This document shows positions 17,240-45,483 of a DNA stretch of 64,000 bases, piece after piece; the stretch's first letter is position 1; each line of letters opens with the position of its first letter. Source of the stretch: Oculina patagonica (taxonomy: Eukaryota). Made by a program: the position numbers and the translations under genes. Below the pieces are notes generated by a model. That model was given only the letters and a program-made list of their open reading frames with translations, made no database searches and had not been told where the DNA came from. The stretch spans positions 3,162,001-3,226,000 of the forward strand of contig NC_135758.1 of assembly GCF_052425735.1 (NCBI RefSeq), read 5' to 3'.

Positions 17240-17545
17240 TCAATCAAGGGTGTTTTAATTTTTTATATTTTTAATCATGTTAATTATATTATCTATAGTA
17301 GCTAGCATTTTTATATTGTATATATTTTAATTAATTTAGATTTTAGGTTTTTAATTTCGTGAAATAACTGTAAACTAGCCGTAAAGCTAAGATTATTNNN
17401 NNNNNNNNNNNNNNNNNNNNNNNNNNNNNNNNNNNNNNNNNNNNNNNNNNNNNNNNNNNNNNNNNNNNNNNNNNNNNNNNNNNNNNNNNNNNNNNNNNNN
17501 NNNNNNNNNNNNNNNNNNNNNNNNNNNNNNNNNNNNNNNNNNNNN

Positions 17546-17747: not shown

Positions 17748-19539
17748 TTACACAATTACGCATTTATGGAAAAGTTTCGAATTCAAGTTTCCACGATCGC
17801 CAAAGTGATCCTTTGAACGAGGATTTAAGGAGAGCATAGTTTGAGTGACCTNNNNNNNNNNNNNNNNNNNNNNNNNNNNNNNNNNNNNNNNNNNNNNNNN
17901 NNNNNNNNNNNNNNNNNNNNNNNNNNNNNNNNNNNNNNNNNNNNNNNNNNNNNNNNNNNNNNNNNNNNNNNNNNNNNNNNNNNNNNNNNNNNNNNNNNNN
18001 NNNNNNNNNNNNNCTGTCTAAGACTGTCTATCTGTAAATCTGTCTATTGCCCCAGTCCTTTCATGTCGTTCAAAATAACCTTTATTTTGTAACAATTACA
18101 AATTATCTGCTATATTAGTGCTTCACATAAAGATTAAAAAAAAGATAAAATATGCCATAATGAGCTAGACATATGCACTGTGAAATTTAAATCTTCAATT
18201 AGTCATGTCTTTAAAACCAGGGTACTTGGCGGCAATGTCTTCGAATTCCTCACCAATTGGTAAACCTTGTCTGCAAAACAGGGCAAATGCCTTTTTTCTC
18301 TGACTATCTATTTATCTATTTATTTACTTACTATCCATTTATCTATATCTATATATCTGTCTTTGCTTCTTTTTGTCTTTTGCTGTATTTCTGTCTACCT
18401 ATCTATTCTGTCTGTTCTGTCTCTCTGTCTGTTTGTCTATCTTCATATCTGTCCGTCTGTCGGACAATTTGTGTTATCCGTCCGTCGGTTGTAGCGGAAA
18501 TTGCATCCCATCGCTTCCATTGAGCATGTTTGCTCAGGACGAGTTCTACAAACAGAAATCAAGTCTTCCCTTCCATAACGACTAGGCTGCGACTTTTTTG
18601 ATGTCTGATCTACATTTCGAGCACAAAAGTAAAGCTTACACCAAGAAACATAGTGCTGCGGAAAATTTCCTATTTAACGAGGAGAGAAATTGAGCAAACA
18701 AAAAATAACATATCAAATTTAATATCTAAGTAAAGGTATTAAAAGGCTTCGTGTGGTATACTAATGCGGATTGAAAATCAAAATTTGTCCTTTGTAATAT
18801 GCTTCTTGTTACGTGACAGTCATGTTTATAAGCCATTGTAACTTAACTTGGCTATCAATTCCCCCTATGACCATTATGGAGAACGGAGAGATGTATTCTT
18901 TTGCTCTTCCTTGAAAACAGGACGAAGTATAGTAAAAAGTGACCATTAAAGGCCACAAGTATTTCTTTTCCTTTCAACTCTTCGGCGAATTAATTAACTA
19001 TTTAATTCTGCTCTTCTTCAATGGGGTGCCTTTTTGAATGTTCAACATTTGCTGGCAATGTCTTTGTTCTTTGCAACCAGACCGGTTTATGGGCAAACTA
19101 TAATGGCGGAGTACTATTTATGTATTCCCAAATACCTATTATTTGACGACAGATTGCGTGGCAAACATCGTGTGCAAGAGGGCACACAAGCAAGAAATTC
19201 TAACAATTTCCTCTCTTTAAACTCAAAAATGCAAACCAACAATTTCAAGAACAAGTGTCAAAGAATAATAAAAAAAATAGATTGAAAAGCTGAACCTAAA
19301 CGTATATCACCATTAGGTTTCAAGGTATCTCAGGTAACAGGTCAGTACTGCTGTAATGGCCAAAAACAGTACAGTTGTCCCAATGTGTAAAAACAGTTCT
19401 TTAATCTTTAGGGTGGTTTAAAAGCTCGGTCTGCAGGGTGGTTATTATAATCCACTCTGGTTTCTTTAGTAGTCACCGACTTTCAGGCTCAGGGGAATGA
19501 ACCTTCACTTTGGAGGCGTCACCCTGAGGAAAAAAATCC

Positions 19540-19900: not shown

Positions 19901-21780
19901 AGCTGACATGCTGCTTGATCCTTTGGAACTCAATGATGTACAAAAAGGACCCAGACACCAACATTGTATATATCCTTGCTGCTGCAGTGACTGACACGGC
20001 ACTTCGTGGCTCCAATATGTACTTCAACTCCTTATCGTGAGGCTTCGGCTCTTGCCATGTGGCAGCAGGCCATGGACCAGGGTATTCCAAGAGTTTTCTG
20101 CTGCCCAGAAGATATCATTCTGACCTGCCGTACAATCGAGAAACGCCCTAAGCGATAAGCTGCAGCGTCGAGGAGGCTTGAAGAACATGGCCTGAGGGCC
20201 AACTGAGAGCATAAATCCCTTTAAAGTTGTGTGGAGTATTTGAAACTCCACACATTTTGCGTATCGCAGAAAAAATCACACGGTTGTGTAGCATCCTGAG
20301 TTTTTGGCATCGCGGTGATGACGTTTAAGTCCTTGGGAGATTGGTGCAGCTTTTCAGCAAAGATGACATAATCATATGAAACAATCCACACATTTTTGTT
20401 GATGGTAAATCGATTTTTCTTTTCGCACAATGTTTGAGAAAAGAATAACTACGCTTGAAGATCTTGTAAACGAAAGCAATGACTTAATTACTAAGTAGAA
20501 TCCAGGTGGCTCAATTTTTGCGCTGCCAATTGATGCGCTGCCAACGAAATGACAGGATTCTTTGACGTCTTGTGGACACAAGCACGGTAACGAATTTGTT
20601 CTAAATGGTATCCTTAAATTACTTTCTAAAAATCGGGAAGTGTTGATTAACAAAGCCGAATATAAAAATGTCTATGGTGAAGTATGAAACCCCTCCAACT
20701 GCGAAAGTGAAATATATATTCGGAGCAGTATTCTAGCAGTATTCTATATACATCAAGGTTTATTTATAAAATTCAAGATTTATGTATAAAAAAACTAAAA
20801 AACGATTTATTTATATAAATCAAGATTCAATTACAGTACATAAATCAAGACTTTTTAATATTCATCATATTTTTTTAAAAAAATATACGTCAAGTTTATT
20901 TATTCATTGTTATCAAGATTCATTTGTATACTTCGAGATTAAAAAGTTCTAAATGAGGTTTCGAGGAAAATCGTTAAACTCTGATATTAGCCTCACTACT
21001 GTTCTCGTTATGCAACAGTGACATCACATGTATACTCACGTGTGTTCATTGCGTATGTTTTGCTGAGGAGCTTTCCACTCTTTTTTCGTGCAAACAAAAA
21101 GCCGGAGAGCCAATTGGTTTTTAATTTCTTCCCTTACTGAAGCAGAAGAAGCAAGTTCTAACTCGCCGTCTAATGCCATCCTCGAAGGGTCGAATGTGTT
21201 GGTGAGTCAGTTGACAATATTTATACATAAATTGGTGGTACTGTAACGTATAACTGCTTGTAGTTGAGATAACCTTACTCTATTTTGACTTCCAGTGCAA
21301 AGCTTGTGCAACTTCTAAATAGAATTGTGTGACTGGTAACTACATTTAGGCGTTGAAGCAATTATATCACGAGGCCACGAACGTGCAGAACGAACATGTG
21401 TGAGTGTGCCACGTTTTGGTTTGTTATATAATCAGTGCACGTGCATGCCTAGAGAAAGGGTCATAAAAAGTGACAGGAAAAATGGCTATATTAAAAATGC
21501 ACGAACTCAATATATAGGACACAGCAGGAAAGTCCAAAATAGTTCGAGAGTGTAAAAATTTCGATGATGTTGAGAAGGTTAATACTACAAACAGATAAGA
21601 TCACCATTGGAAAAAGAAATAGCCATGAGAAATGATGGTGTCTCGCCATGCGGCCATATTTACACTTGCGCCTTGTTTTCTCTTCGCGCTCGACAGAGAT
21701 AGAGAGGGTCTACTAGTAGTCTAAAATAGTTCAGAAAAATCTGGATAAGTTGTAGACGAAGTTTAGTCGATCATAGCTTG

Positions 21781-21871
21781 ATGACCATCAAATTTTCTAG
21801 TGCATTTCATCACGATGGCTTCGATCACAAACATGAGGCAAATGAAGAAGTAACCGTTGGAGATCTTGAAG
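21781..21871 (+). CDS. Exon 1 (predicted) of Cys-Pro-repeat protein gene; MTIKFSSAFHHDGFDHKHEANEEVTVGDLE, phase-1 end
   Basis: ATG at 21781, open frame to donor G|GTAGAC (GT 21872, weak consensus). Phase 1 matches the next exon. TATA-like sequences at ~21425 and ~21511. Confidence 0.6.
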
Positions 21872-22659
21872 GTAGACTTTTTTACTTCTTTTAAAAAATT
21901 TCTTATTTAATGAGATTAGCCATGATAACCGTGATTATTTTCTAAATCTGGAAGTCAAATGAAGAAAGTTGTGCTATGATATATATCTTAAATGGAACGA
22001 TAGTGAAATAAGACTGTGTTGTTATTGTAATTTTCCTCATTTCAACAGGTGTTACCAAAACTAATACTATACTAACACAAATTCTTTAATATCATGTCAC
22101 ATTCATGTGGATAAATACGCTGTTTGTTAACAGGTATTCTTACCAACGATAATTGTGAAATCGTTCAGTTCTAGGTGAGAAATACAGTCCATTAATAGTC
22201 AACAGTAACTAACTGCTTTAAGCGAAATGGATGTCAACTTCCCTGATATTAAATTCTCCAAAACAACAATTGCTGATTTCTTTATCTAATCCCTACCTAA
22301 TAGTTAGTTAATGGTTACTTCCAATGAACCTGTATTACTGATGCCTTAGCTTGTTTTAAGTTAACTGACAAAAGAATATCGTTTTCTCAGACTGTGTTCA
22401 AGAGTTGACTTATAATGATGTGAAGCTGACTGTGACCTGACTGTATCTCAACAGCTTATTCCTTTACTAATCAGTACTTATGTCCCACATCAATTGCTGC
22501 CAAAGTCTCGATATGCATTAATGGAGATCTTCCTGAATCAGCGTCGCTCGTCCCAGCCCATGTAATGTAGCACAACTGAGCTGGTATTGGTAAAACGACA
22601 ACGATCCAAACTTTGAATGCCACCTTACCTTAAAGCAAATATTTTTTTACTTTTATGTA

Positions 22660-22836
22660 ATGTATATGAAATGATTCATATATGAACTGCGGATGGATAT
22701 GAAAGTGATAAATGATCATCGCAGTGAATTTCCAATTTAAGCAATTGGAATAAAGAAGCCCTGAATTTTTTTCTCAGGCTTCTTTATTCCAATTGCTTTA
22801 ATTGGAAATTCACTGCGATGATCATTTATCACTTTC
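22660..22836. repeat. Interspersed hairpin repeat next to exon 2 acceptor
   Basis: ~60-bp inverted arms spanning 22701-22836. Confidence 0.7.
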
Positions 22837-22859
22837 TTTTTTTACTTTGTTGATTGCAG

Positions 22860-22942
22860 CTGCAACCATCGATCGTGTAGCATCAGAAACATTGGCCAAG
22901 TTTGTAGAGAAGTGTCCCATTATCCCAAAGAATCCCAATGAG
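22860..22942 (+). CDS. Exon 2 (predicted); (A)ATIDRVASETLAKFVEKCPIIPKNPNE
   Basis: Pyrimidine tract plus TTGCAG| acceptor (22858-59) and GAG|GTAAGA donor (22943). Phase 1 in, phase 0 out. Contains a KCP motif like the downstream exons. Confidence 0.7.
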
Positions 22943-23900
22943 GTAAGACTTTTAAGCATTTGTGTTCCAAACAAGAATGTTTCATTCTCCCTTTCAGACC
23001 ACCATGTTTATCCTGTAATGTAATGTTAGTAAAGATCAAGAATTCAAAGATTCAGCAAGACAGTATGACCTGGTTGCTTGATACTGTAAATAGAAACTAG
23101 GTTTCAACTCTTGGGGATAAAGGAGTAAAAAATTTCGCATTTTCAAAACCATTCATTCATCTGTTGGTAGTCTATGCAGAATTATATTTTTAGAAACAAT
23201 TTTAAGAACTCAGAATTTTTTCTGAGTTCTTTCTCTCCACATATCAATCCATTATTATTTAATTTTAAGAACACCCTAAAAACATTTTCATGCTGATTTT
23301 GCAGAAAACACCCGATATATAGGAACAAAATCAGCTTGAAACCCTCTTTTATGCGAGTTTTTACTGTATCTAGTGTAATTGTATTTTTTGTGGAAGGTGT
23401 TGTGGTTGTGGTAGTCTTGGCTGTTTTCTATGGTAGTTTTAGCTGTTAAACTTTAATGGTGGTTGTGGTGGTTTTATAATTTGTGCTGTTGACGATATGC
23501 GTAGTAGTGGTGGTGGCTGTCACGGCTGTGGTAGTTTTGATGGTATTTGTTGCTGTTTTGATAAGTGCATCAGATTTTAGTTAGCTGTAGTAGTTATGAT
23601 AGGTATCCTGGTTCTAATGGTTTTCCAAAGGCAGTGGCAGTTTTTGTGGCTGCCGTAGTTTTGGTAACTGTGCTGGATGTGCTTAGTAGTTCTTGTTAGT
23701 TGAAGTTCTTAACTTTCGTACAGCTGTGTGGTAATAATCATATTTGAAACACTCACAGCGTGAGTGTTCAGTCTAATGGTTAGACTGAATTTACACCTTC
23801 TCAGGATAAAATCTAATTAAGTAACTGAATACATGTTCCCACGCAAAATTTACTCAAATGAAGCCCTTGTCTTCCAGTTTAAGATGTGAGATTTGACCTT

Positions 23901-24168
23901 AATTAGCCATGTTCAAAACGAGCAGGGGACTGGGTACGAATATTCAATATCGATTGGATTGAAAAAATGGGCCTGTCATTTGAAAGAGCATCCAAAAATT
24001 AGTAGCTCAACCAAATTTGAGAGTTATTGGTTTAAACGCAAAGGCATGGAACTCTTTTAAAAATCGTTTAAATAAGAGAGCTTAGTATGGCTGGATGGAC
24101 AGTTTTTCAATCCAATCGATATTGAATATTCGTACCCAGTCCCCTGCTCGTTTTGAACATGGCTAATT
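23901..24168. mobile_element. MITE with perfect ~66-bp TIRs
   Basis: AATTAGCCATGTTCAAAACGAGCAGGGG... and its reverse complement at 24103-24168. Confidence 0.8.
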
Positions 24169-24979
24169 GGTATTCACTAACATTGACTGTATTTTATAGC
24201 TGGCACAGTGAGGCTAATGTGCAGTCAACAAATTTTGTAAAACTAAACGAAAAGACAGGAAAGATCGTAAGCGTGAGTAAAAAGAGTGCCTGCAACAATT
24301 CTACCAACCACCCAACTTTCTTTGAGGCTTGTATATCAAGAATATCTTTTTTGAACCGTATTTTACGGATTTTTTAGTCTGTGCTTATTGTTACGATAAA
24401 AACCCTTTCAACTTGAACTCAGTGAATCAGTGTAACCTTTAGAATATTCCGTTATCTCCCTTATTCAGATGTTTTCCTAATGAAAATACTATCTTTACAG
24501 ATATGCTATTTTACCATATTATTGGCACCACCTCGACATTCACGGGTAAATAACTTGTTATGCAAAGGTTGTCATTATATTTCGTTGATATAGCTTGCCT
24601 TTTATTAAAATTATAATTTAATTAACCTTGTCTGTGTGATTCCTTCTGATTATTTTTCAGTTTCGTCTGAGCAATACGAAACTAACGTTTTTAGCAATTA
24701 ATTATGTAACAGATTATATTATAATCAACATTCCTTCCCTTTTATGCTCATCGTGCGTCTTTATTTATCCACAGCCTCTAATCGGTCTAATTTTCCTCCT
24801 CTAATACCCCACTCAACAATGCTGAAGAGCCCTAACCGGAGGATAGAGGAAATGAGCGGTTAACGCGTCGATGAATTCAAAGATGAAGTCCAGACTAACC
24901 TGTCTTGATGTGTCAATTGCTAGTTTGTTTTCAGGCTTTAATAAACTTTTATAATTTATTCGTCGTGAAAGTAATAAGT

Positions 24980-25056
24980 TGAGTGAGTTACTGAGAGAAC
25001 GAATTGCGACACCTGAACGATTCTATGCTCAATATGTATCTATGAAGCCGAGTAAT
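24980..25056 (+). pseudogene. Degenerate first-exon cassette (ATG CTC AAT ATG TAT CTA TGA)
   Basis: Diverged core and an in-frame stop. Confidence 0.4.
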
Positions 25057-26856
25057 GTAGTATCATTTAGGTGTAGGGGTCTGTAGTAGCATACCACTCC
25101 CTATTAACAGTTATAATAGGCGCTTACTTAATGTTAAGAATACTTCATCTACTTTAAGCCAATTAGTCAGCGTCTATTACTTGGCGGCTTGTAGAACCTT
25201 TCATTTCTAATGTTGTGATGACATCTAAAATGGCTTAATATGAGTGATGTTGCTGCTACAATCTGTCCTTTTATTTTTGTTATCGACGCCCGCGGTGTAT
25301 ATCATTCAAAACGACTTATCAAGCGACAAACCGAACTGAGTATTCTTTGTTATATGCTTTAAATACGTCTATCCACCTTTCAGCCAAATAAAAAAACTTT
25401 GTGTCAACAAAAAAGTGCTCGTTGTGTAAGTTTTTGATGGGTGCAATTTTGTCGGCGTCTCTGACTTGGTGCATCTCAATTGCTGAATCAATCTGTATGA
25501 TTGCATAACAATCCCCGCCATGATTGATGCACGGACTCAGTTTTATATAGTCAAAGTCGGAACTAAGCAAAAGAGTTAGTGGCAAGCTAGTTTATATAGT
25601 TTGTCCATTCTTCCGGATATCTCGACGGGACAACTGCTTAAACTGACTCAAAACTGAGTAAAACTACGTTATTAAATTACATAAAACGTTCAGCAACTAG
25701 CTCGGTCGAATAAATTATCAGAGCAAAATATTGCGTGTCCCATTAGCGAAAGCAATTACTTCACTACTATTTTACGGTAAACAAATTCAGGAAACGCTCG
25801 TACTGGTGATAGATGTCGCTTTACAAACATGTATTATGCAAGAAAAACCTCTTTAGGACTTCACAAACATGAAAAGTAAATAAGTTAATTGAAAACTAAT
25901 ATTATTGTAAGTTGATTGTGCAACTGAGTGGAAAGGTAAGATAATGTTGAACTGAAGCTGACTACGTAAGCGTAAAGACGATTATGTGATCTTGCTTTAG
26001 CAATAGCTTCCAGATCTTTGTGAAATAATGAAGGCGCAGTCTCAGGTTGCGTGTGTAGGCTTAACTAATATGTGCAAGGCCTTTTTAATTAATTTTTCTT
26101 TTATTAAAATAACATTCCATAGAGTCTGCATGATTTCATCTTAAAATTGATTTCTGTTTTCTGCTTTCGTCTTCCGCCGGACTCCATATTTTTTCCTGGA
26201 AAATACGAACCTAAAGTGAATTTTAGGCTCGGATATTTTTCTTTCCTAGACTGGAGCAACAAGTACAACAAGAAAGAATTTTCGCCTCATTATGTAACAC
26301 CGGTCAAGTTGGCATTAAAGATACTGCGGAACTGGCGCGTCGGTGAATTCGAAGATTATAAAACAGTTGTCTTGGTTCCAGACTAATCTATTTTCATGTG
26401 TAAATCATCTTTTGTCTTCTCAATCCTATTTCGTTTTACAATTGATTTACCTAGAAAGACTGAAAGAATAATAATATGCGTGAGTCATTGACAGAGTGAA
26501 CTACGACTGCTCATACAGATGTATGCCTATCTGTCCCATTTAACGTATTTGCTGCTGCACGATTTTTTTATTCATAGTAATATACTATTTAATATTAGCA
26601 AGACGACAGTTTTCTCTTGTTTTGTAACACATCAAAGTCAATTCATCAAGATTTTACAAATGAACGATTATACCAGTCCGGTTTTACTTGATTCAAAGTG
26701 TCAATCATAATTTTTATTATTGTTTCTGGTCAGGCTTTACTGAGAATTTATTCACCGCCAAAGTAAAATCATTTGAGTGAGTCAGTGACAGAGTGAACTA
26801 CGACACCTCACAAAAATTGTTCCATTTTCGGGAAATATTAAGAAGAGCTAGATTTT

Positions 26857-26883
26857 ATGCTCAACATGTCTTTTTCAAAGCAA
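26857..26883 (+). CDS. Candidate alternative first coding exon MLNMSFSKQ (intronic)
   Basis: Perfect core at 26774-26804, then CAA|GTAAGT. An extra core without an intact exon lies at 26481-26510. Confidence 0.55.
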
Positions 26884-29597
26884 GTAAGTAAACATACTGA
26901 GCTTTTACTTTCAAAGCTAAGTAAGGGGTGCCATTTTTTTTAAGTCACCAATGAATAAAAAGCATCATTTAATCGGTTTAGCTCCATGCTACTCCTCAAA
27001 TACGTCTTCTCCAAGTTAACAGAACTTCAGTGATCTTTTAACCCGATTAGTGAGCGTATAACACTTCACGGCTTATTCTGGAATGTTAGTGCGTTCATTT
27101 ATGATGGTCTAATATCTTTAAACCAGACATCGATTCGGTGGGTGACAAACAGCTCCAAGTATCCAATTATTCGAGTCCACGCGACGACATTTACCATCTA
27201 AAAGATCGAAGCAAACTTCCTAAAGGCAGGTATGCTGAACAATCTCTTTGAAACTTCAATGCAGTGATTCCAATAAGGTTTTATTTTAAGCAATGTATAC
27301 CGTGGTTTTATTTTTATATAGCTGTCGCATCTGAACACATCAGACACTGACACATCAAAAGTCTCTTCCTATAAAAACATAAAAAGTGCATAGATTTATC
27401 AAACGCTTTACCGACGCGTATCGTGAGCTGTGCTATTTTGTTAACGTCTCTTACTGATGATGTATTTTTCTGAATCAAAAAGTAGCTGAGTCTTTCCTTA
27501 GCTTAAAACTCATTATTGAAAATTTGCCATATTGTTAAATTATCCAACTGAAAATAAAAATATTAGGTTCTCTTCGAATTCTCAAAAGGTCTTGAGATGA
27601 ACATCGCTGAATTTTCTTTGAAAAGTCCTTATGAAAAGATATGAGGTCTTTAAATGGACCATGTACGATGCTCAGGACCTTGAAGCCACTATCAAGCGAA
27701 GTTCAAAATTGATAGACCGTCCAAGAAAGAATTTTTAAATATTTTTCATTACTAAAATTTGTGACTGCGTGGCGTTCGCCTGGTTAGAACAACAGCTCCT
27801 CCTGCCTTTTGGTTCTAAGAGAAGGTTCCAAGAAGCTCTCACTTAATCGAATTTAGTTCAATTGAAATTCTAGGCTTATGGTATCTTTTGCCACTTTTCG
27901 TAAGTTTAAGAATTTAAAGGGTTGATTTAAATCCATCCTATATCTGCATGAGACTTTTGGTTTATCTTTACAAATTGTTGCGCAGTATTTTGACCTGCAT
28001 GCGAAGCACGTTATGGTGACATGCTGATTGTACTAACTATAAAAAATAAACTGACCTCTCATTGAATGAATCTTTAGTAAAAAGCAAACTATTTCTTTGT
28101 ATTGCTATTAATCAGATGTGAGCTCAAAATAACGTCTAATTCCGTGATTTTTAAATCAGCTAAAATGGTATAAGTCTTCAAACGTCGAATACGCTCGCCC
28201 AAATTTACGATTTTAGGTATTCTCATGCTTTGTTTGTTCATTCGTTCAAGCCTGTATTTCCCAAGCGGTAAAATGGTTTCGTGTAACCACGTCTGCTATT
28301 CTTTATAAAATAGAAGAAGACTCTGAGATACGGCTGAAATTAAATTGGCTATGGAGGGGCTTTAGTCAAGAAACAAAGCTCGCAGAATCAAAACCTTTCT
28401 CGAGATCGATAGTGAGCATGAAGCCAGGGGCGTTGTTAAAATAAATAAAAAATAATGATGAAGATAATAAAGAAAACTTTAATAAAGCTCTTATATGGTC
28501 GAGTGGTCCGTTTTTATCGATGGAATAATTTCAATTGTATCCACATCATCTTGGATATCATCGCTAATCCGCAGTCAATAATCTAATCGACGCTGGATTA
28601 TTGCCTTTCTTTTGTTTCCATGTAAACCATTTCATAATTTATTGCATGGGTTTTATGTCCGACATTATACATGGAAAGTTTAATCCAAAAATAACATTAA
28701 AGACAAAAGTCCCCACTTTTTTTGGTCAAAAAAAAAAAAATCTACAGAGCTCATAAATAAAATATATTTTCCATAAAAATTTTGGATACATATGTGCAGT
28801 ATTTTTTTTTTTTACCGTTCAACTGCGGTTCTGAAAACATTGCTAAGTATTTGTTTTGACCAGTGGAAAAAGTGCACTGGAGTACTCTGTAACTTATTTG
28901 GTTGATTTCACACATTATTCAACTATTAATATCGCAGGAATCTCGTAATAATATCCCAGGCAATAACTAATATATTGAGCGAAGTAGATATCGAAGAAAA
29001 AGCAAGCAAAGAAAAATGATAAGGCTACCACGAAATAAGGTCATGGAATAGAACGCCTGATCGCGCGCGTGCAATATGCTGGTCACGTTTTTAGGTTTGT
29101 TATATAATCAATGAGAGATACTACTACTAGGAGATTACAACGAGTTACTACGATCACTGATGAATCGGATGACCCCAACTTCTCATACTGCATTTGATCG
29201 GTTTTTCGACCAGATACTTTTCCATCTCAACAACAAAAATTGAATATTTTTAAGGCATGAATATTCCCTTTCTCAAACAGACACAACAACAGATTTGCAC
29301 CATATTACGTAACACATCAAGTATGGCAATGTATCAAAAAGGTTGCTAAAATTAGATAGTACCTGAGGTAACGCAACGGCGAGTTTAAAATGAAAGACCA
29401 ATTGTGTCCATTCCGGAATATCTTGTTTTCATATGCCAATCATCGGTTGTTTTCCTGATTTTATTTAGCTGTTAAGTATTCATTCCACCGTGAAATACAA
29501 TCATTCGAGCGAGTCAGTGACAGAGTGAACTACTTCAGCTCAAATAGATTGTTCCATTTTCAAGTAACGGTCGATTTAAAACGATTTTCTGATCAGC

Positions 29598-29615
29598 ATG
29601 GCGCTTTCAAAGCAG
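29598..29615 (+). CDS. Candidate alternative first coding exon MALSKQ (intronic)
   Basis: Core at 29507-29533, then CAGC ATG GCG CTT TCA AAG CAG|GTAAGT. Confidence 0.55.
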
Positions 29616-32600
29616 GTAAGTGAATATCTGCAGCTGAAATTTCTACTAAACTGCCTTGATAAGTTTATAAGACCAAATAAATTTAGTCATTTATTCAGTT
29701 AAACCTGGAACTGAGCGTTAAACACTGCTCAAGACGGTTTCTTAAGGAAAAGTTGCGCTTTTAAATTATGGTGGTTTGATATATCTTATAAGCCAGACAT
29801 CTGCGGGTAGCTAACAGTTTGTGCGATTCTGGGGTTCTTAGGGACGGAATTCGAATCAATCAAAAATAGCAAATTGAAGCTGCCTTTCAAAGAGGGCATG
29901 CTAAGCGCATGCAAGCTCAGGTTTGCAAGATTTGCGCGGTAAGCTTTTATGTCTAGTCGTTTTATGTTTAGCCTTTACCAACGCGTATAATATGAGCCGT
30001 ACTATACGAAGGGAGAGCAATTTTGTTAATGTCCTCGCGCTTTCTTCTGGGAATCCTTTTCCCACGCGGTAAAATGACCTCATGTAGCCACAGCTATTCT
30101 ATTTAAAATAGAAGAAAACTACTTGATAAAGTTAGTTCAAAGGATTTAAATCATAAAGCAAGTTAAGAGAAATAAAGATCTTATCCCTTAGTGATAGTAA
30201 CCGAGGAATATTTTCCAAGGGCTGTCGGTTTCTCCTTGGTGGCGTTTCAGACACATAATTCTTCGTAGTTAGAAGGCGATTATGGATGAGGCATTAAAAG
30301 GCCTCCGTTCTTCTATTTACTTCAGGCGTTCCTTCTGATTTTTCTTTACATCTCCTAACAAAGTTAAAAACCAATGAATTCATTTCTCACATATGACATA
30401 TCTGTAAAAGCCGTGAGCCGTACTGAAGGAATTGCAATTTTGTTAACATCTTTGGCACGGTACGTTTTCTGAAAGAGGCATGAGTGGCACGAGCATTGTA
30501 GACGATTCCTTACCGCGTATGACTTGGTTAGCTCAGCAGGATTGGGTTCTTGAAATTCCCAGATACTTTGAAGACCTTGAAAATGAGAAAATGTATTTTC
30601 CCATAAAAAAATTACTGGGTTTTATCAGCATTTCAGAGTCATTAGTCTTTGAATTTTATTAAGATGCCCTTCGATGCTGAAGACTACTTGAAAGAAAAGC
30701 CGATTTTGATAATATCGTATTAAGATTGTTATTTATTGTATGAAGTGATTGAGGTGTACCTAAATAATCGTAACTCGATAAAGGGTTGTGTATTTTGTGT
30801 CCACCCGGCCCGTGCTTGAATAGCTTCAGTTGTCTTAAAATGCAACGAGGTTGTAAAGTTGTCACTAAGCCTGGATAGTAAGTTAGTAAAAAGTTTATTT
30901 CCGTACATATCTATATATTTAACCCGTGTGGGCTAACTGGGGACACTTATTAACCCACACAGAAAACTGTTCCAAAAGTTATTCAAGTATGACTGCATAG
31001 CCTAAAGTGCAAACAAGCTGGCTTGAATTTAAATGCTCAAAATGACAAAACTGACTCCTCAAGTATCAAAATAGACTAACCCACAAGTCGAGCTCACAAA
31101 GTAATCCGGGGTCTATAAAATTAGGTACAGTGCTTCGCTTCTATACAGTGATAGAATTTTACTGTCTGGCGCCATTTATCTGACATTCACACGACCTCGA
31201 TTCTACAAATTATTACTTTTGAACTTCATCTGGTTATCCGACACTGATACGTGCAAAGTCTGTACACGAACGTGTCAATAGTTAGGGTCATTTTTAACGA
31301 CTAAAGATGCAATCGTCCAGAAAACACGCCAATTTGTGTGTGTACAACATGAGAAAGTTCTAATAGGTGCATAATATACATATAATTATATTTTTTAAGA
31401 AAACTGTGACGCATTCCGGCGACACATGTTATTTTTAGAAAGCCCAAGCAATAACCCTTTGGAGCCCAAATTATTTTTTTGTGAAATTCTTCAATTTTGG
31501 ATGAGTCTTATAAAAGTTGCTCTATCTTCAGTTACATCTGTCATATTAAAGCCAAATTTGGATATGTGACAGACAAGACATAGGGCTATCTGTCAATCAA
31601 TATATTTATTAATAAGTTACTTATAAATGATGTCTAACATGTGGTTGAGCATTAAGTTAGTGTAACGCAACATGTTGACTTCAATGCTTTTCACTGTCCT
31701 ACACTCTTGATTTAGCCATGAAAATTACTGCACATGTCTAGATTGATAGGCAATTTATTGAATATTATTTTGATATCACATTTGCTACCTTTGACTCTTT
31801 CAAAGCTACATTAGGCCCCTAAAAACATAGTAGTTGAGTGTCACGCGAAATAACTATAGGTAACTTTTCATACGAAAATGTTTTTGCTGTTGCACTCTAT
31901 CGTGTCCTTTTCTCCCTAGAAACAAAAACAAATGTTTCGTAGCCTTCCTGGATCAGAAAAATCTTCATTGCACTCATAATCTTCAGTATTATTGTCATGA
32001 AGGTTTAGTTCCTCTTGTTCTTCAACAAAATTATCATTCTCGGAGGAATAACTTCATTATTTTCATCCTCGGTGTCACCTTGTAAGCCTTCGACATCACA
32101 ATTCAACCATCGTCGGGTAGGTCAACGCTTTCGTCGAGATAATCGTGAATATTCGTCCAAAAAAAACTTCCCCTACCTTCAAATATGTCGGGCTAAGTCA
32201 AGGAAAACTTGTTCTCTTCATAACAATCGAAAATTTCACCAAAATTCTGCAGAAACTCGCTAAAATACTAAAAACAGCACAAAATGGTGGATAATTTTAC
32301 TGCCAGGCGTTGCAATGCAGGGGGAGACTGGAAACTAAAGCGGGAGTCCGCTGAGCGAAATTGCGAGGTGTGCTTTGATGTCCGATATATCGGACACTGG
32401 GCCGCAAAGGGATAACTAGTAAGAAAATTAGATATCGACAAATAACAAACCAAAAAATATATATAGCGACATCAACCACCGTTGAAGAAAATGTAGACAA
32501 GCCATGCATGGATTCCCTCAAAGTAACTAAAATATTTTTTTCACTTTCCGACATAAGGCCCCAGATAAGAACTCCTGATAATGAGCATGCAAAAAAAAAA

Positions 32601-33164
32601 CGTGATGTGCCACGTTTTAGATTTCTTATATAACCAACGCGCAAAACAAATTAAATACATCAAAACAAATTAAACGCTTTTAGCAAGAGACAGCCGGAAA
32701 TGTGATTATATATCTCAGAACCCACGAGAAGGATCGAAAATGTAAATGGCTAGATGATGTTGAAAAGCTCGGGAAACTGCGGCGAAGTTGTTGTAGATGG
32801 AACTGAAGGACTAATCGTCGATGGCAGATGGAGGGACATAAAAGTCAATTGCTGCTGAACAAGTTTTCTGTTCCTTGGTAATAAATTAATTCGTCTAAGA
32901 AACACAGTAGTTTTCCCATATTACGTAACACAACAAGGTCAATTGATACATCAAGATTTTATGAATGGAGGATTATTCTAGTCCGGTTAAACTTGTTTTC
33001 AAGTGTCAATCATCCGTTTGTTTGATTGTTTCAAATAAGGCTTTAGAAGTTACTTACCGCCAAAGAAAAATCAGTTGAGTTAGTCAGTGACAGAGTGAAC
33101 TACGACAGCTCAATCAGATTGTTCCATTTTCAAGTAAACTGTTTGAAGAGATTTTTTACTCAAA

Positions 33165-33182
33165 ATGGCTTCTTCAAAGCAA
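33165..33182 (+). CDS. Candidate alternative first coding exon MASSKQ (closest to exon 3)
   Basis: Core at 33076-33106, then AAA ATG GCT TCT TCA AAG CAA|GTAAGT, phase 0 into 35205. Confidence 0.6.
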
Positions 33183-35204
33183 GTAAGTAATTATCAGTTT
33201 TACCCTTCAATGCTAAGTAAGGTGTGCCGTAATTTAAATCAACGGAGACTACAGAGAATCATCCAAAGGCACAGTTACATGCCACTCCCTAAAAATGTCT
33301 ACTCGAAGTTAAGAACACTTCATCCAAAGTTAAGAGCACTTGATCGATTTATTTCGTGAGCGTTCGACACTCGGCGGCTAATTAAGGAATGCAGTGGAAT
33401 GCAGTCAAAAGGATAAAACGGACTTTCTAAGACAACAAATTGAATAATACTTTCCAAATTTACTGTGTGGTGATATTTTGATAGAGCTGTGTTTAGCTAT
33501 TTAATAATTTTCACTTCTAATGTCACATTTAGCGTTAAAACGATTAAGCCAGATTAGTAGACGCTAAAGCAACGCGCATTGTACCAACAGAAAAGAGGAG
33601 CAATTTGTTAAGGGCTTTGACAGATTGTACTTAGTGTATTTCGCCGAGTCAAAAAGTGACTGAGTGTTAAAAGTTATAATTCTCGCTTTGTAAGATTCAA
33701 GTTGGAGATTGCGTATATCTGCCTCCTATCACAGGTAGCCCAAGCTCCTAAAGGAGCCGTCAACATATAGACCACATATGACATTGCGTAATAACGTTAT
33801 TATAAGGGTTTGTATGGGAATTTACCGATCGTAAAAAATAATTCAAAATAGAGGGAAAATATCCAATAAAATTCACTTACCTATCCTCTTCTATGCATAT
33901 GTTGTGTTTCTATGCCGTTTGGAGGCGATTTGAAGCCATTTCAGTAGGTTTTAGGTTCGCTGGTTTCCTCTCTATATATAATTATATAATGAAATGATTG
34001 ATCGGTTCTCCCTTTTCATTAAAATAAACGTTCACATAATTTGCATTTTAAAAAATCGTTTCAAAAATGAGTTTTTTCCGCTATTAAAATTAGTACAACA
34101 AACATTGTTTGTCCTGTTATGTAATAATGTAAATCAAGAAGCTTCTAGTCGATATGCCCGTGACTCGACACGTGTTGGCAGACACCCAAGAAGTATAACG
34201 TTGGAAAGCGCCTAGGCACAAACGAGAGGACTAATTCCTATTTACAAATGGTTTGATTGCTGTTAGTTTAAATTGTGTTCATCTTTGGGTGTTAATAGAT
34301 TTTTTTTTTAATTGGACTTAAGGATTTGTCTCGTCTAAACTGACTTTAGATAGTCGCAACAAGAACGGCAACAGAGGAATCATCACATAATCAGTAATTT
34401 TTTTTGCAACCTACAAAGCCAACCATTAAGTTTTTGCCATCTTCTGTTAATTCAAAACGCTTGAACTGCTCTGAGCGACTGATTTTGGCTTATCGTTTAT
34501 TTTTCCCAATGATCAATTATCAAGATGCCTCGTCATGTTTGGTCAACGCGTCGGTGATTCGAAAATGAAAGAGCTATTGTGTCCAAGTCTGCTTGCATTG
34601 GTCAAGCATCAGTTGCTATCTCGGTCCGATCTGGCTACAGCATTTATTCACAGAAATGAAATTCCAATCAGTTTATAGTGAACAGAGTGCATTGCGACAC
34701 AGGGTCCCAAAGGAGATCTGAAGGAAAGAGGAAGGATGGAGTCTAGCAATTTGCTTTGAAACCTGGAGACTCGTTGTTTTTCTAAAATTATCATGCTACA
34801 GAGCGTTAAGCCCTGGAAACGTTTTCCCTGGAGCCCCAAGCCCTGATTTTTTAATGGGGCAACTGGATATAGATTGTGGTATCCAACCTTCTCAGTAAAA
34901 AGTTTATTGTACTGAAGACTGCGGACCAGAGCGTAGGCGAGCTTTTTCTCTCAAAATAGGCGAATCAGAGTAAGGCACAACTTTCTTCTTGCAATTAGAA
35001 ATTTTTTGTCACTGAATTTTTTGGTCAATACAATACAAGTTGCCTTTTCTGTCATAACTCTATTAGGCGCACCCAATTGGAATGCTAGTCCGTTACATGT
35101 TATCCCTCGCATTGTTTCTAGTTGCTTTAACAATTCATTAGTATTTCTTTTACACTCACCATACGCGTTGTAAGACTAAGTACTAAAAATGCTTTGTTCT
35201 CCAG

Positions 35205-35570
35205 TACCCAGCCTGTTTGTCCCTTGAGGAACTCAAGCGCCAATGTCCTGCCTTCGCGGACAAGGTTTGCCCATTTTCCAAGCTACCGGACGAAAAGAAA
35301 GGCGTGGCTGCCAAGTGTCCTGAATTCAAGAACGGTTGTCCGTTTAAAGGCTGCAAAACTGTTGGAGAGTTTGAAGACAAGCTGGGTCAAATGCGCGACC
35401 AGTGTAAGGGTGACGCTGCTTACGTGCAGTTTCTCCGAGATACCCACCACACTGCCAAAGTGAAGGAGGTTGACGATGGAATGGCTTGTCCTTTTTTCCA
35501 CACTAAGGGTGGCTGCCCCTTCGCCAAAGACACTAAAGGAAAGCCAATACTTTCTCCGGACTACATCGTG
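35205..35570 (+). CDS. Exon 3: Cys-Pro repeat domain 1 (YPACLSLEELKRQCPAF...SPDYIV, 122 aa, 6 CP motifs)
   Basis: TTTGTTCTCCAG| acceptor, GTG|GTATGT donor, 366 nt phase 0-0, GC-richer than flanks, clear paralogy to exon 4. Confidence 0.85.
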
Positions 35571-36012
35571 GTATGTTTACTGTTAAGAATCCTTCTTCGC
35601 GTGTACAACAATTCACTCGCAATTTAGACGGAAGAAATATCTTAATCAATTTCTCTCTTCATTTGAAAAGGCTACCATAAGAAATGTAATCTTTGAAAAA
35701 AATAACTGGTCGCAATTTATACACCACTACACGACAAAGTTTATTAAAGTATGTGGAAGCATTTTTAAATCTGGAATTTAAAGTTTATAGAGCTTTACGA
35801 CTGTGAAATCTGAGCACAAGGATAGAGGTTAATTCTCTGGTGGTTTGCCTAGCCTACACTTGAATTAATGCTTATTTTTAGTTTATTAAATGAAGGGAGT
35901 GTTTAGTTAATTGTAAACAAGGATATTAGAAACTTTTGCTAAACAATTAAATTACATTGACTCTGTTAATCTTGGGTTTTATTTTAAATATTTATATTTT
36001 ACTTTCTTCAAG

Positions 36013-36360
36013 ACCCCCTTGGAAGTCACCTTGAACGACGTGATGCACAAGTGTCCAGCTTTTGGCAAAGGTGTGTGCCCATACGCCCGCCTTGTTAACG
36101 ACTGCAAAGGTCTGGCTGCCAATTGCCCGGCTTTCAAGGGAGGCTGTCCATTCAAGAACTACAAGACCGTTGGCGAGTTCGTGGAGAAGATGGCACAGAT
36201 GCGAGATACCTGCAAGGGGAAAAAAGCCTACGAGCAGTTTTTCAAGAAGCTTCTTGAAGTCACCAAGAGTGAGCAGCAGAAGATGGGTGCATGTCCTTTC
36301 AATGCACATATCTGCCCTTTCAAGAATGATGCTCAAGGAAAGCCAATCATCCCCAAGTAA
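36013..36360 (+). CDS. Exon 4 (terminal): Cys-Pro repeat domain 2 (TPLEVTLNDVMHKCPAF...GKPIIPK*, 6 CP motifs)
   Basis: TTTCTTCAAG| acceptor in phase 0, TAA at 36358-36360, AATAAA at ~37142. Aligns with exon 3 (CPAF, CPF/Y, GCPFK, KTVGEF, QMRD.CKG, GKPI). Confidence 0.85.
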   Translation, partial: TPLEVTLNDVMHKCPAFGKGVCPYARLVNDCKGLAANCPAFKGGCPFKNYKTVGEFVEKMAQMRDTCKGKKAYEQFFKKLLEVTKSEQQKMGACPFNAHICPFKNDAQGKPIIPK

Positions 36361-36558
36361 GGTCGCAGGTCATGAAGAGCGGCTTCTTAACATGGATTTG
36401 ACGAGAACAACTAGCAAACTGGAATGACGATAATTTGGAGTATTGCTATTAGATTATATATCACGATTTTGTTACGTGTTTTTCGTAAGCTTGAAAGCGT
36501 TAAAATAGATCCTTTCACGGTTTTTGGGTGCGATCTTAATTAGGAGGCAAACACAGCT

Positions 36559-36926
36559 GAGAATACAATTGGATGTCTGGGATTCTGTCGACTTTGAACC
36601 CCTGGTGAATACGGCAAAATAACCGTAACTTGACAGCTTGACATATCCTTTCAAAATAGTTTAAATCCTGGCATTCAAACCCTTTTAACCGAATTTTGCA
36701 AATTAGTTTAAAAAATAAGAGACAGAACTTGATTTTTTTAACGAGAATACAATTGGATGTCTGGGATTTTGTCGACTTTGAACCCCTGGTGAATACGGCA
36801 AAATAACCGTAACTTGACAGCTTGACATATCCTTTCAAAATAGTTTAAATCATGGCATTCAAACCCTTTTAACCGAATTTTGCAAATTAGTTTAAAAAAT
36901 AAGAGACAGAACTTGATTTTTTTAAC
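36559..36926. repeat. 2 x 184-bp tandem duplication in predicted 3' UTR
   Basis: 36559-36742 and 36743-36926 are near-identical. Confidence 0.85.
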
Positions 36927-40815: not shown

Positions 40816-40968
40816 ACACCAATGGCCGGCACTTGAGTTGCTGTGTCCAGCTTTTGGTAAGGACACGTGCCCATACAGTGGCCCGTTTGCCAAGAACAAA
40901 GGCGTCGAGAGCTATGCCCAGGATTCAACGATGATTGCCCATTTAAGAAATGCAAGACCGTCTGTGAG
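40816..40968 (+). pseudogene. Decayed paralogue of the terminal CP-domain exon, truncated by a SINE-like tail
   Basis: AAAG|ACA CCA ATG (TPM, cf. TPL), an in-frame TGA, and frameshifts. Still encodes CPAFGKDTCPY and CPGFNDDCPFKKCKTV. Confidence 0.75.
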
Positions 40969-41271
40969 ACGAGTTTTTTTTTTTCTCCGGATTATCCGGT
41001 TTTCCTCCCTCCACAAAATCCAATACTTCCAAATTCCAATTCGATCGGGAATACACGCCCCTACAAGCTTTTAGCTTTAATCCTCACTGTATCTAAATAA
41101 AGGTAATTTATTTTTTTTAATTATTTATGAAACCAAAACTAGAACGTGACGGTTGTTTGGTGATGTGTTAAACTAATTTGCTGCGAGTCTGCTAGTGTAA
41201 AATGCTTTTTTTTATTTTCTTTAATTTAAAAGTCTCATGTTGTTGTTTTTTCCTTAATTTTTATAATCAAG

Positions 41272-41583
41272 GTTCCAATGGACGTCGACTTCGACGACAT
41301 TAAAGCCAAGTGCCCAGCCTTTGATAAGAATACGTGCCCATACATGGGTTTGGTTTCCGACCACAAAGGCCTTGCCAAAGGCAAATGCCCGGTATTCAGT
41401 GACGGTTGTCCATTTAAAAACCTCAACACCGTTGGAGAGTTTGTGGAGAAGATGACACAGATGCGGAATACCTGCAAGGGGAAGGCGGCTTATAGAGAAT
41501 TCTTCCATCAAGTCGCCGCTCGATCCTTCCAAGAAAAAGCAAAAGAAGTTGGATGATTGCATTCTCGATGCGTCTTTGTCAAT
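41272..41583 (+). pseudogene. Paralogue of terminal CP-domain exon (VPMDVDFDDIKAKCPAF...), premature stop at 41554-41556
   Basis: Acceptor TCAAG| in phase 0. The first four CP motifs are intact. The last CP pair is lost (remnant AFSMRLCQ in another frame). Could still be a shortened alternative last exon. Confidence 0.7.
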
Positions 41584-44500: not shown

Positions 44501-44717
44501 ACCCGTATCTCGATCTGCGACAAAACCCTAACGTAATATGTAATCAAGGCCAAGTTAACAGCGATGAACACAAGCATGTTTTTGAAAACTTAATTGTTAA
44601 TTACTATAATAACTTTTTGATCGATAGGTGTTATGTGGATTCTTTGTGTTTCACTTTGGTTAAATTTTTTTTTATTATCAATCTTCAAGCTATTTTAATA
44701 GCTTAATGTCTTAAAAG

Positions 44718-44870
44718 ACACCAATGGCCGGCACTTGAGTTGCTGTATCCAGCTTTTGGTAAGGACACGTGCCCATACAGCGGCCCGTTTGCCAAGAACA
44801 AAGGCGTCGAGAGCTATGCCCAGGATTCAAGGATGGTTGCCCATTTAAGAAATGCAAGACCGTCTGTGAG
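44718..44870 (+). pseudogene. Second copy of decayed CP-domain exon (YPAFGKDTCPY...CPGFKDGCPFKKCKTV)
   Basis: Duplicate of 40816-40968 within the 3.9-kb tandem duplication. Confidence 0.7.
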
Positions 44871-45171
44871 ACGAGTTTTTTTTTTCTCCGGATTATCCGG
44901 TTTTCCTCCCTCCACAAAATCCAATACTTCCAAATTCCAATTCGATCGGGAATACACGCCCCTACAAGCTTTTAGCTTTAATCCTCACTGTATCTAAATA
45001 AAGGTAATTTATTTTTTTAATTATTTATGAAACCAAAACTAGAACGTGACGGTTGTTTGGTGATGTGTTAAACTAATTTGCTGCGAGTCTGCTAGTGTAA
45101 AATGCTTTTTTTTATTTTCTTTAATTTAAAAGTCTCATGTTGTTGTTTTTTCCTTAATTTTTATAATCAAG

Positions 45172-45483
45172 GTTCCAATGGACGTCGACTTCGACGACAT
45201 TAAAGCCAAGTGCCCAGCCTTTGATAAGAATACGTGCCCATACATGGGTTTGGTTTCCGACCACAAAGGCCTTGCCAAAGGCAAATGCCCGGTATTCAGT
45301 GACGGTTGTCCATTTAAAAACCTCAACACCGTTGGAGAGTTTGTGGAGAAGATGACACAGATGCGGAATACCTGCAAGGGGAAGGCGGCTTATAGAGAAT
45401 TCTTCCATCATTGCCGCTCGATCCTTCCAAGAAAAAGCAAAAGAAGTTGGATGATTGCATTCTCGATGCGTCTTTGTCAATAA
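45172..45483 (+). pseudogene. Second copy of VPMDVDF... CP-domain exon with a 2-nt deletion near 45410
   Basis: Near-identical to 41272-41583. The frameshift gives the tail HHCRSIL...AFSMRLCQ*. Confidence 0.7.

Follow-up and report, generated by a model that had tools for sequence, protein, structure and literature searches.

In vertebrate heme oxygenase-2 (HO-2), Cys-Pro-Phe (CPF) motifs are located near the C-terminus, just ahead of a hydrophobic tail. The motifs of ALAS1, Bach1, HRI, IRP2, Rev-erb, and HCCS are single and short, and lie in flexible regions of proteins that have other functions. To our knowledge, no heme regulatory motifs other than such scattered short ones are known. How labile heme is buffered and routed in cells is an open question. 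The motifs of ALAS1, Bach1, HRI, IRP2, Rev-erb, and HCCS have been reviewed (PMC10377097), and those at the C-terminus of HO-2 switch between thiol and disulfide and thereby control heme binding (PMC2742820).

Here, we analyzed a 64,000-nucleotide stretch of the genome of the coral Oculina patagonica (hereafter, the window) that contains LOC144652460, a gene annotated in RefSeq as "uncharacterized protein LOC144652460." Its product is best explained as a 243-246-aa cytosolic protein composed of two uncharacterized domains of a family that we define here as hexa-CP (about 115 aa, with a two-helix core surrounded by three Cys-Pro (CP) pairs and a significant match to the profile).

Gene Structure and Transcripts

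The coding sequence of LOC144652460 comprises one of three alternative first exons and two domain exons, with decayed copies of the latter downstream.

26857..26883, + strand: alternative first exon A, coding MLNMSFSKQ, donor GTAAGT (isoform X1, 246 aa)
29598..29615, + strand: alternative first exon B, coding MALSKQ, donor GTAAGT (isoform X3, 243 aa)
33060..33182, + strand: alternative first exon C, 5'UTR block plus MASSKQ (coding 33165-33182), donor GTAAGT (isoform X2, 243 aa)
35205..35570, + strand: coding exon of hexa-CP domain 1, ag|..|gt, phase 0, 122 aa
36013..36360, + strand: terminal coding exon of hexa-CP domain 2, ag|..TAA, 115 aa
40832..45477, + strand: two tandem 3.9-kb copies with partial decayed domain exons (40832-40968 plus 41272-41544; 44734-44870 plus 45172-45477)

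When joined to the two domain exons, exons A, B, and C reproduce exactly the RefSeq isoforms of the XP_078368591/606/596 set (P0252, P0258, and P0251, respectively), which are 243 or 246 aa long and contain 12 CP each. The exon at 35205-35570 matches these isoforms identically and was also matched in the profile search. The three first exons align with one another, with 74% identity between the exon-A and exon-C regions across 488 nt, and the 5'UTR block of exon C is conserved (33060-33114 aligns with the 5'UTR of an mRNA from another coral, L017). Spliced orthologous mRNAs of other corals encode 241 aa and start with MAKQ; a pattern search for a MAKQ-type first exon found none because Oculina uses MA(L/S)SKQ.

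The two domain exons exist as described in the initial annotation, and their splice sites can be read in the sequence. The GT..AG joint between them (35569->36012) was found in three RNA-like runs (X1, X3, and X5), one of which has SMART-oligo loose ends and is recognizable as cDNA. The DNA-like run X11 lacks this joint, and its contigs span the intron. LOC144652460 is well transcribed; exon contigs had a depth of 10^2-10^4 versus about 10 in the flanks, a crude measure given that contig depth is a poor indicator of expression. Contigs from run X3 (record 21, 36012-36524) and run X1 (record 7, 36273-36584) extend past the stop codon unspliced, and the 3'UTR extends to at least 36584. The third CP pair is missing from the downstream copies. 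One of them is linked to LOC144652460 in a GenBank ab initio model (P0254) but not by the RNA contigs; splicing of this type, from a GTAAGG that overlaps the stop (36357), was rejected as the main form because the RNA contigs pass straight through the stop into the 3'UTR.

The initial annotation had placed two further exons upstream, yielding a four-exon model (91+83+366+348 nt) of 295 aa with 13 CP and a His/acid-rich N-terminus. The features that bear on this model are as follows.

21173..21201, + strand: counterpart of the distal ATG exon of a paralogue (MPSSNRRVECV), frameshifted such that MPSS and RRVECV are in different frames
21781..21871, + strand: proposed exon 1 (MTIKFSSAFHHDGFDHKHE..), a piece of open reading frame with GT after it
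22860..22942, + strand: proposed exon 2, 83 nt, coding ..KCPII.. (the 13th CP), with good acceptor and donor sites

The arithmetic of this model is reproducible, but its first two exons are in no transcript or gene model. The segment at 21781-21871, which would encode the His/acid-rich N-terminus, has no homologue and appears in none of the 12 Oculina models of the gene cluster. The exon at 22860-22942 is homologous to an exon in a RefSeq isoform of the paralogue (P0257 residues 11-39) and is in no model of LOC144652460; when 21173-21201 is spliced to it, the product is out of frame and reaches a stop. A loose end just 5' of 35203 in run X5 reads ...ATGGCCCTTTCAAAG, a first exon of the MALSKQ type. 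The transcripts in these runs join the two domain exons without the upstream two, and the gene model is corrected to three alternative first exons and a product of 243-246 aa.

The Hexa-CP Domain and Its Conservation

The two domains (~115 aa) are 48% identical (BLASTP, E 4e-36), and each contains six CP motifs arranged as three pairs. The spacings that had been noted initially (CPAF-x4-CPF/Y, CPxF-x3-CPF, and CPF-x4/6-CPF) hold in both domains, as do the common strings KTVGEF..QMRD.CKG and GKPI. In domain 1, the CP cysteines are at domain residues 14, 22, 38, 45, 95, and 104, accompanied by His81 and Cys67. Pro follows 12 of the 17 Cys in the 243-aa protein (binomial P about 2e-10, Pro = 7.8%), and the elementary unit of the Cys-Pro-aromatic motif pairs is CPxFxxGCPF.

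An alignment of 87 domain sequences revealed that the six Cys are conserved at 95-100%, the Pro after each at 85-99%, the aromatic residues F17, F41, F47, and F106 at 90-100%, and His81 at 78%. Position 67 is occupied by His in 32 sequences and by Cys in 19. The domain has two sequence attributes of heme regulatory motifs, namely a CP dipeptide with conserved Pro followed by a hydrophobic or aromatic residue. The Cys within a pair are spaced by 7-9 residues rather than forming a CxxC/CPxC knuckle, and the pattern CxxCxxCxxxCP is absent from the domain sequences that were read. Four-Cys half-modules recur as repeats in some protist proteins, and the CP pairs of repeat proteins vary in spacing and are odd in number.

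Distribution and Fusion to Heme Oxygenase

A profile search identified at least 150 relatives of the domain, 71 of them at E<=1e-10. Both window domains are members of the hexa-CP family (relatives at E 1e-51 to 1e-10) and fall within an anthozoan stand-alone clade (SH-aLRT 85). The family is tandemly expanded in the Oculina genome, with at least six intact loci. All named homologues are annotated as "uncharacterized" or "hypothetical," and full-text literature searches covering the motif, the fusion, and the locus names turned up no account of either the domain or the gene.

The Pfam Heme_oxygenase domain is located downstream of hexa-CP in 38 of 47 long carriers, with hexa-CP being N-terminal. 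This fusion is found repeatedly, in anthozoans, choanoflagellates, oomycetes, MAST, dinoflagellates, Perkinsus, amoebozoans such as Balamuthia, and others, such that the domain is attached to heme oxygenase (HO) in at least five eukaryotic supergroup-level lineages. C-terminal HO-2-like CPF motifs were detected in 28 of the 31 fused proteins checked, and in the fused sequences that were read they directly precede a hydrophobic C-terminal tail. The only HO gene of Oculina encodes three domain copies, a C-terminal VCPFA, and a hydrophobic tail (HO exons were found on contig C7 only). The home context of hexa-CP across eukaryotes is best explained as the N-terminus of membrane-anchored, HO-2-like heme oxygenases, and this fusion provides strong indirect support, short of proof, for a link between the domain and heme. 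PF01126, the catalytic helical domain of HO, was matched in neither window exon product; judged by its sequence, the window protein is related to the N-terminal module of HO and is not itself an HO.

Pfam searches with both exon products yielded no match above cut-off save one to Pneumocystis MSG in exon 4 (22.9 bits, cut-off 22), which was treated as compositional given its Cys-rich repeat. Matches to CCCH zinc fingers scored 10.9, 8.5, and 6.9 bits versus cut-offs of 30, 29, and 25, and the sole 4Fe-4S ferredoxin match was in a relative (P0004; 22.1 bits, cut-off 26.2).

Structure Predictions

With an alignment, AF2 generated a folded model (pLDDT 76.7, pTM 0.68) with a two-helix core flanked by CP pairs in non-helical stretches (pLDDT about 68-80). 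In this model, His81 is mid-helix, and Cys95 follows 14 residues later on the same helix. The single-sequence fold of the domain was poor (partner pLDDT 33-35), and a complex prediction that combined the core of a protist HO with heme and the enzyme's own N-terminal domain scored 0.00; as the partner folded poorly without an alignment, this score speaks neither for nor against binding. The profile search of the PDB gave no match below E 0.2, and Foldseek against the PDB gave none below E 1.8. The best VIA-align match among 48,161 chains (Z 4.6) was within noise, and those to CFEM Csa2, GUN4, and a bilin-binding domain (Z 3.4-3.9) were at noise level and are not considered evidence. Matches in AFDB clusters were limited to two Stylophora family members; an Atlas shape search gave no match and an ESM Atlas feature search no usable one. 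The initial impression of an unrecognized family thus holds, with no Pfam family, PDB sequence relative, or fold match.

Candidate Functions

We consider it moderately probable that hexa-CP is a redox-sensitive module for multi-heme binding or hand-over that became a free-standing, tandemly expanded protein in anthozoans. The initial annotation had proposed a non-enzymatic buffer for multiple hemes or metals, or a redox sensor, which is partly borne out. In the reduced domain, Cys thiolates would ligate ferric heme in the manner of heme regulatory motifs, with His as a possible sixth ligand, and closure of paired Cys into disulfides would release the heme. When attached to HO, the module may capture labile heme and then deliver it to the catalytic core or gate that core. 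The anthozoan copy would have lost the enzyme and duplicated both internally and in tandem, resulting in a soluble, well-transcribed heme buffer or carrier.

A more far-reaching version of this heme hypothesis is offered tentatively. Hexa-CP may be an ancient, hitherto undescribed, structured multi-heme-binding module and the original heme-capture device of eukaryotic HO-2-type enzymes, of which vertebrates kept the C-terminal motifs only. From it, anthozoans may have derived an abundant cytosolic store or chaperone that is dedicated to heme, gated by redox state, and made up entirely of heme regulatory motifs, possibly for tetrapyrroles of algal symbionts or prey. Such a store or chaperone, if real, would represent a protein class not known so far.

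Several observations sit uneasily with a heme function. Classical heme regulatory motifs are in disordered segments, whereas hexa-CP is a conserved folded domain. Its six Cys and two His/Cys positions add up to eight ligands, enough for two tetrahedral zinc sites; the poor single-sequence fold fits a cofactor-dependent fold of any kind; and there are weak, sub-threshold Pfam matches to CCCH zinc fingers and Fer4.

The main alternative, itself unlikely, is that hexa-CP is a structural metal domain, with two zinc sites or an Fe-S cluster built from the six Cys, His81, and His/Cys67. Such a module would serve HO in protein interaction or electron relay, for example by recruiting its reductase, and the coral proteins without the enzyme would not bind heme but act as adaptors or redox proteins. 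The eight conserved potential ligands per domain, the exchange between His and Cys at position 67 (as commonly seen for metal ligands), a model that folds only with an alignment, the sub-threshold zf-CCCH-family and Fer4_11 matches, and the repeated four-Cys half-modules of protist proteins are all consistent with this alternative. However, Pro followed by an aromatic residue after all six Cys is the signature of heme regulatory motifs, and neither zinc nor Fe-S coordination needs it. The Cys spacing, with neither knuckle nor CxxCxxCxxxCP pattern, also argues against metal sites, as do the odd-numbered, variably spaced CP pairs and the lack of a zinc-finger fold match. In the AF2 model, moreover, His81 and Cys95 could not share one ion because they are 14 residues apart on the same helix. 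Heme, rather than zinc or Fe-S, is the putative ligand.

Less likely still, CP pairs may cycle between dithiol and disulfide without stable heme, as a thiol redox or gas (CO/NO/O2) sensor or a sacrificial thiol buffer that would tune HO activity or shield the cytosol from oxidants. The pairing of Cys, the thiol/disulfide switch described for the HO-2 C-terminal motifs (PMC2742820), and a well-transcribed gene with many paralogous loci in one coral are compatible with such a role, but it leaves the invariant Pro, the aromatic residues, and the conserved His unexplained and largely overlaps the heme-binding module proposed above, in which redox state gates heme binding. Finally, that the four-exon, 295-aa protein is the true product is highly improbable and largely refuted: its phases are compatible, its frame is open, and its exon 2 has a homologue and good splice sites, but none of the 12 Oculina models uses its exon 1, the transcript loose end before 35203 is of the MALSKQ type, orthologous mRNAs begin with MAKQ, and the genuine distal ATG exon does not join in frame.

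A conserved six-motif domain would provide a defined, easily expressed object for tests of heme capture, redox gating, and hand-over to an enzyme. For coral biology, it identifies a well-transcribed, tandemly expanded family annotated only as "uncharacterized" that may bear on the handling of heme, iron, and tetrapyrroles under stress.

Comparison With Known Systems

CCCH zinc fingers (zf-CCCH_DUS3L, zf_CCCH_4/5) share with hexa-CP a local C-x-F-x-G-x-C pattern that accounts for the weak HMM matches, whereas hexa-CP has no His at the finger position, no fold match, and scores far below cut-offs. The CFEM domain, an eight-Cys heme-binding helical basket of fungi, is likewise a small Cys-rich helical domain and is used for heme capture and hand-over. 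CFEM domains are extracellular and disulfide-bonded and lack CP motifs, and the structural match to Csa2 (Z 3.9) is at noise level and thus not evidence of relatedness.

The motifs of ALAS1, Bach1, HRI, IRP2, Rev-erb, and HCCS resemble those of hexa-CP in that a hydrophobic or aromatic residue comes after Cys-Pro, with CPF among the commonest forms. Sequence homology stops at the dipeptide, however, whereas in hexa-CP the motifs form the conserved core of a family of homologous domains. Vertebrate HO-2 (Cys265-Pro, Cys282-Pro) is similar in that paired Cys-Pro-Phe motifs are physically joined to a heme oxygenase, and the fused hexa-CP relatives keep C-terminal CPF motifs before a hydrophobic tail. 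In contrast to HO-2, hexa-CP has six motifs within a conserved domain of ~115 aa that is built on a two-helix core; this domain is N-terminal, occurs in up to three repeats, and in anthozoans is also found free of the enzyme, as in the window protein, which consists of hexa-CP domains without an HO domain.

Gene Structure and Transcription

Two copies of a ~115-aa domain with six Cys-Pro (CP) motifs in three pairs, here termed the hexa-CP domain, are encoded in the window (C1:3162001-3226000 of a 529-Mb assembly; GC 35-45%) on separate exons that combine with alternative first exons.

Exons of the gene (window positions, forward strand)
26857-26883: first exon MLNMSFSKQ, GTAAGT donor; with the two domain exons, isoform X1
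29598-29615: first exon MALSKQ, GTAAGT donor; with the two domain exons, isoform X3
33165-33182: first exon MASSKQ, GTAAGT donor; with the two domain exons, isoform X2
35205-35570: domain-1 exon, phase 0, acceptor side TGTTCTCCAG, donor GTATGT
36013-36360: domain-2 exon, acceptor side TTTCTTCAAG, TAA at its end

The domain products comprise 122 and 115 aa and share 48% identity (BLASTP, E 4e-36). Both exon products display what the initial annotation had described, namely six CP motifs in three pairs with the proposed spacings and the shared strings KTVGEF..QMRD.CKG and GKPI. Pro follows 12 of the 17 Cys of the RefSeq-supported protein (P about 2e-10).

A GT..AG joint from 35569 to 36012 was found in contigs of the RNA-like sequencing runs X1, X3, and X5 and was not found in the DNA-like run X11, whose contigs span the intron. 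Loose ends in run X3 carry what we take to be the SMART template-switch oligo, and X3 is therefore a cDNA run. Contigs read through the stop codon to at least 36584, and 36013-36360 is therefore the terminal exon. Contig depth was 10^2-10^4 over the exons versus about 10 in the flanking sequence, which is a rough indication that the mRNA is abundant.

Profile and word searches reached twelve O. patagonica proteins in one 90% cluster. The three first-exon splices are identical to isoforms X1, X3, and X2 of RefSeq "uncharacterized protein LOC144652460", such that the window is O. patagonica DNA and the encoded protein has 243-246 aa; in other corals, the orthologous mRNAs specify proteins of 241 aa with a MAKQ start. 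The sequence of a loose end before 35203 in run X5, TCTGATCAGCATGGCCCTTTCAAAG, is that of a MALSKQ-type first exon. The first-exon regions are paralogous (73-74% identity), and an almost invariant block, GAGTCAGTGACAGAGTGAACTAC..ATTGTTCCATTTTC, occurs in each of them about 85 nt 5' of the ATG. The GAGTCAGTGACAGAGTGAACTAC block can be aligned with the 5'UTR of an orthologous mRNA contig (1240 nt) from another coral, and the block is therefore transcribed. These regions (26700-26920, 29440-29660, and 33010-33230) are serially duplicated, and AP-1/MARE-like elements (TGAGTCA / GTCAnTGAC) lie inside the block.

The gene had initially been modeled as four exons encoding 295 aa and 13 CP motifs. The arithmetic of this model is reproducible, but its exon 1 (21781-21871) lacks a homolog, gene model, or transcript. 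Exon 2 (22860-22942) is flanked by good splice sites and matches residues 11-39 of P0257, a RefSeq isoform of a paralogous gene, at about 68% identity, but its frame from the counterpart of the distal ATG runs into a stop. P0257 begins MPSSNRRVECV; in the window counterpart (21173-21201), MPSS and RRVECV are in different frames, and splicing to 22860-22942 yields a stop after 36 codons. The gene is real and transcribed, with a corrected 5' end.

Other Features of the Window

Downstream of the gene, 40832-45477 holds truncated domain exons in two tandem 3.9-kb copies, and three decayed domain fragments are on the minus strand (51254-51364, 58336-58509, and 62394-62516). These copies and fragments look like birth-and-death relics in the cluster to which this gene belongs. 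A GenBank ab initio model (P0254) fuses one truncated copy to the gene via a donor, GTAAGG, overlapping the stop codon.

Contigs of X1 and X11 skip 976 bases at 31435-32412, with 9 filler letters, ACCCCAGCT. Individuals seem to differ here by an insertion/deletion polymorphism, the segment probably being an intronic mobile element. At 33700-34000, X11 depth rises ~100-fold (about 12,500 versus about 110), with go-back and opposite-strand joints, indicating a high-copy repeat within the first intron. Runs of N occupy 17398-17545 (148 bases) and 17852-18013 (162 bases) within sequence of strong GC skew (0.24).

The Family in O. patagonica and Other Corals

The genome encodes six intact two-domain loci, including that of the window, together with decayed copies. 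Seven two-domain loci were recorded in all, at 2.93, 2.99, 3.07, 3.20, 7.125, and 7.145 Mb of C1 and at 16.79 Mb of C14; at 7.125 Mb, the second domain exon matches partly or with internal stops. Four loci carry RefSeq names (LOC144652460, LOC144666566, LOC144652427, and LOC144644470). In a phylogenetic tree, the window domains group apart in a clade of stand-alone anthozoan proteins (SH-aLRT 85) that holds subclades of domain-1 and domain-2 exon type, so the internal duplication is older than the coral species sampled.

The sole heme oxygenase (HO) gene of O. patagonica (contig C7:297858-302498, minus strand) encodes three hexa-CP domains and an HO core, together with a VCPFA motif and, at the C-terminus, a hydrophobic tail. 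The three N-terminal domains are on one 490-aa exon ORF. Some 30 kb away, C7:268710-269426 (plus strand) is a separate two-domain ORF without introns that belongs to the HO-type subfamily and resembles Stylophora LOC111327423.

Fold and Conservation of the Hexa-CP Domain

The family had not been recognised from sequence, and searches agree: no Pfam family was found, profile searching gave no PDB relative, and no fold match was present in PDB, AFDB clusters, VIA-align, or Atlas. An AlphaFold2 model from an 87-sequence alignment was moderately confident (pLDDT 76.7, pTM 0.68) and predicts long helices at 53-66 and 71-94, with the CP pairs in non-helical arms. Conservation is 95-100% for the six Cys, 85-99% for the Pro that follows each of them, 90-100% for the aromatic residues F17, F41, F47, and F106, and 78% for His81; His occupies position 67 in 32 sequences, and Cys does so in 19. 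In some protist proteins the CPxFxxGCPF pairs alone are repeated, with varying number and spacing, and the pair thus looks like the elementary unit.

Putative Function and Association With Heme Oxygenase

Scanning all 1.84 billion representatives with HMMER identified at least 150 relatives of the domain. Pfam Heme_oxygenase lies directly C-terminal to the domain in 38 of 47 long carriers; HO-fused carriers include Desmophyllum HO, Actinia HO, Xenia, Balamuthia "Heme oxygenase 2", Perkinsus, Aphanomyces, Mylnosiga, Gymnodinium, and a MAST stramenopile. A 418-aa relative from Salpingoeca urceolata has three hexa-CP domains and then a CPV motif, is anchored in the membrane at its C-terminus, and lacks an HO core; it seems to derive from an HO-fused protein by loss of the enzyme, with the tail anchor retained.

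Since this fusion recurs over a broad phylogenetic range and the motif matches the CPF form of heme regulatory motifs exactly, the function that we infer for the protein, and the best supported by a modest balance of probability, is heme binding or hand-over. As a natural corollary, the paired Cys would gate in a redox-dependent manner. The main rival, a structural zinc or Fe-S domain, is considerably less probable: eight conserved ligand-type residues, the His/Cys swap at position 67, and a poor single-sequence fold are compatible with it, whereas the invariant Pro and aromatic residues, the Cys spacing of 7-9 residues, the location of His81 in the middle of a helix, and the lack of any zinc-finger match argue against it. 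Full-text literature searches turned up no account of either the domain or the gene, and the link of this unnamed family to HO is, as far as could be found, new.

With respect to heme binding or hand-over, 28 of 31 fused proteins checked have one to four C-terminal CPF motifs past the catalytic core, and in the sequences read these directly precede the hydrophobic C-terminal tail. The HO-fused relatives are in this regard like vertebrate HO-2, in which CPF motifs are likewise followed by such a tail. The CP motifs of vertebrate HO-2 act as a thiol/disulfide switch for heme binding (PMC2742820).
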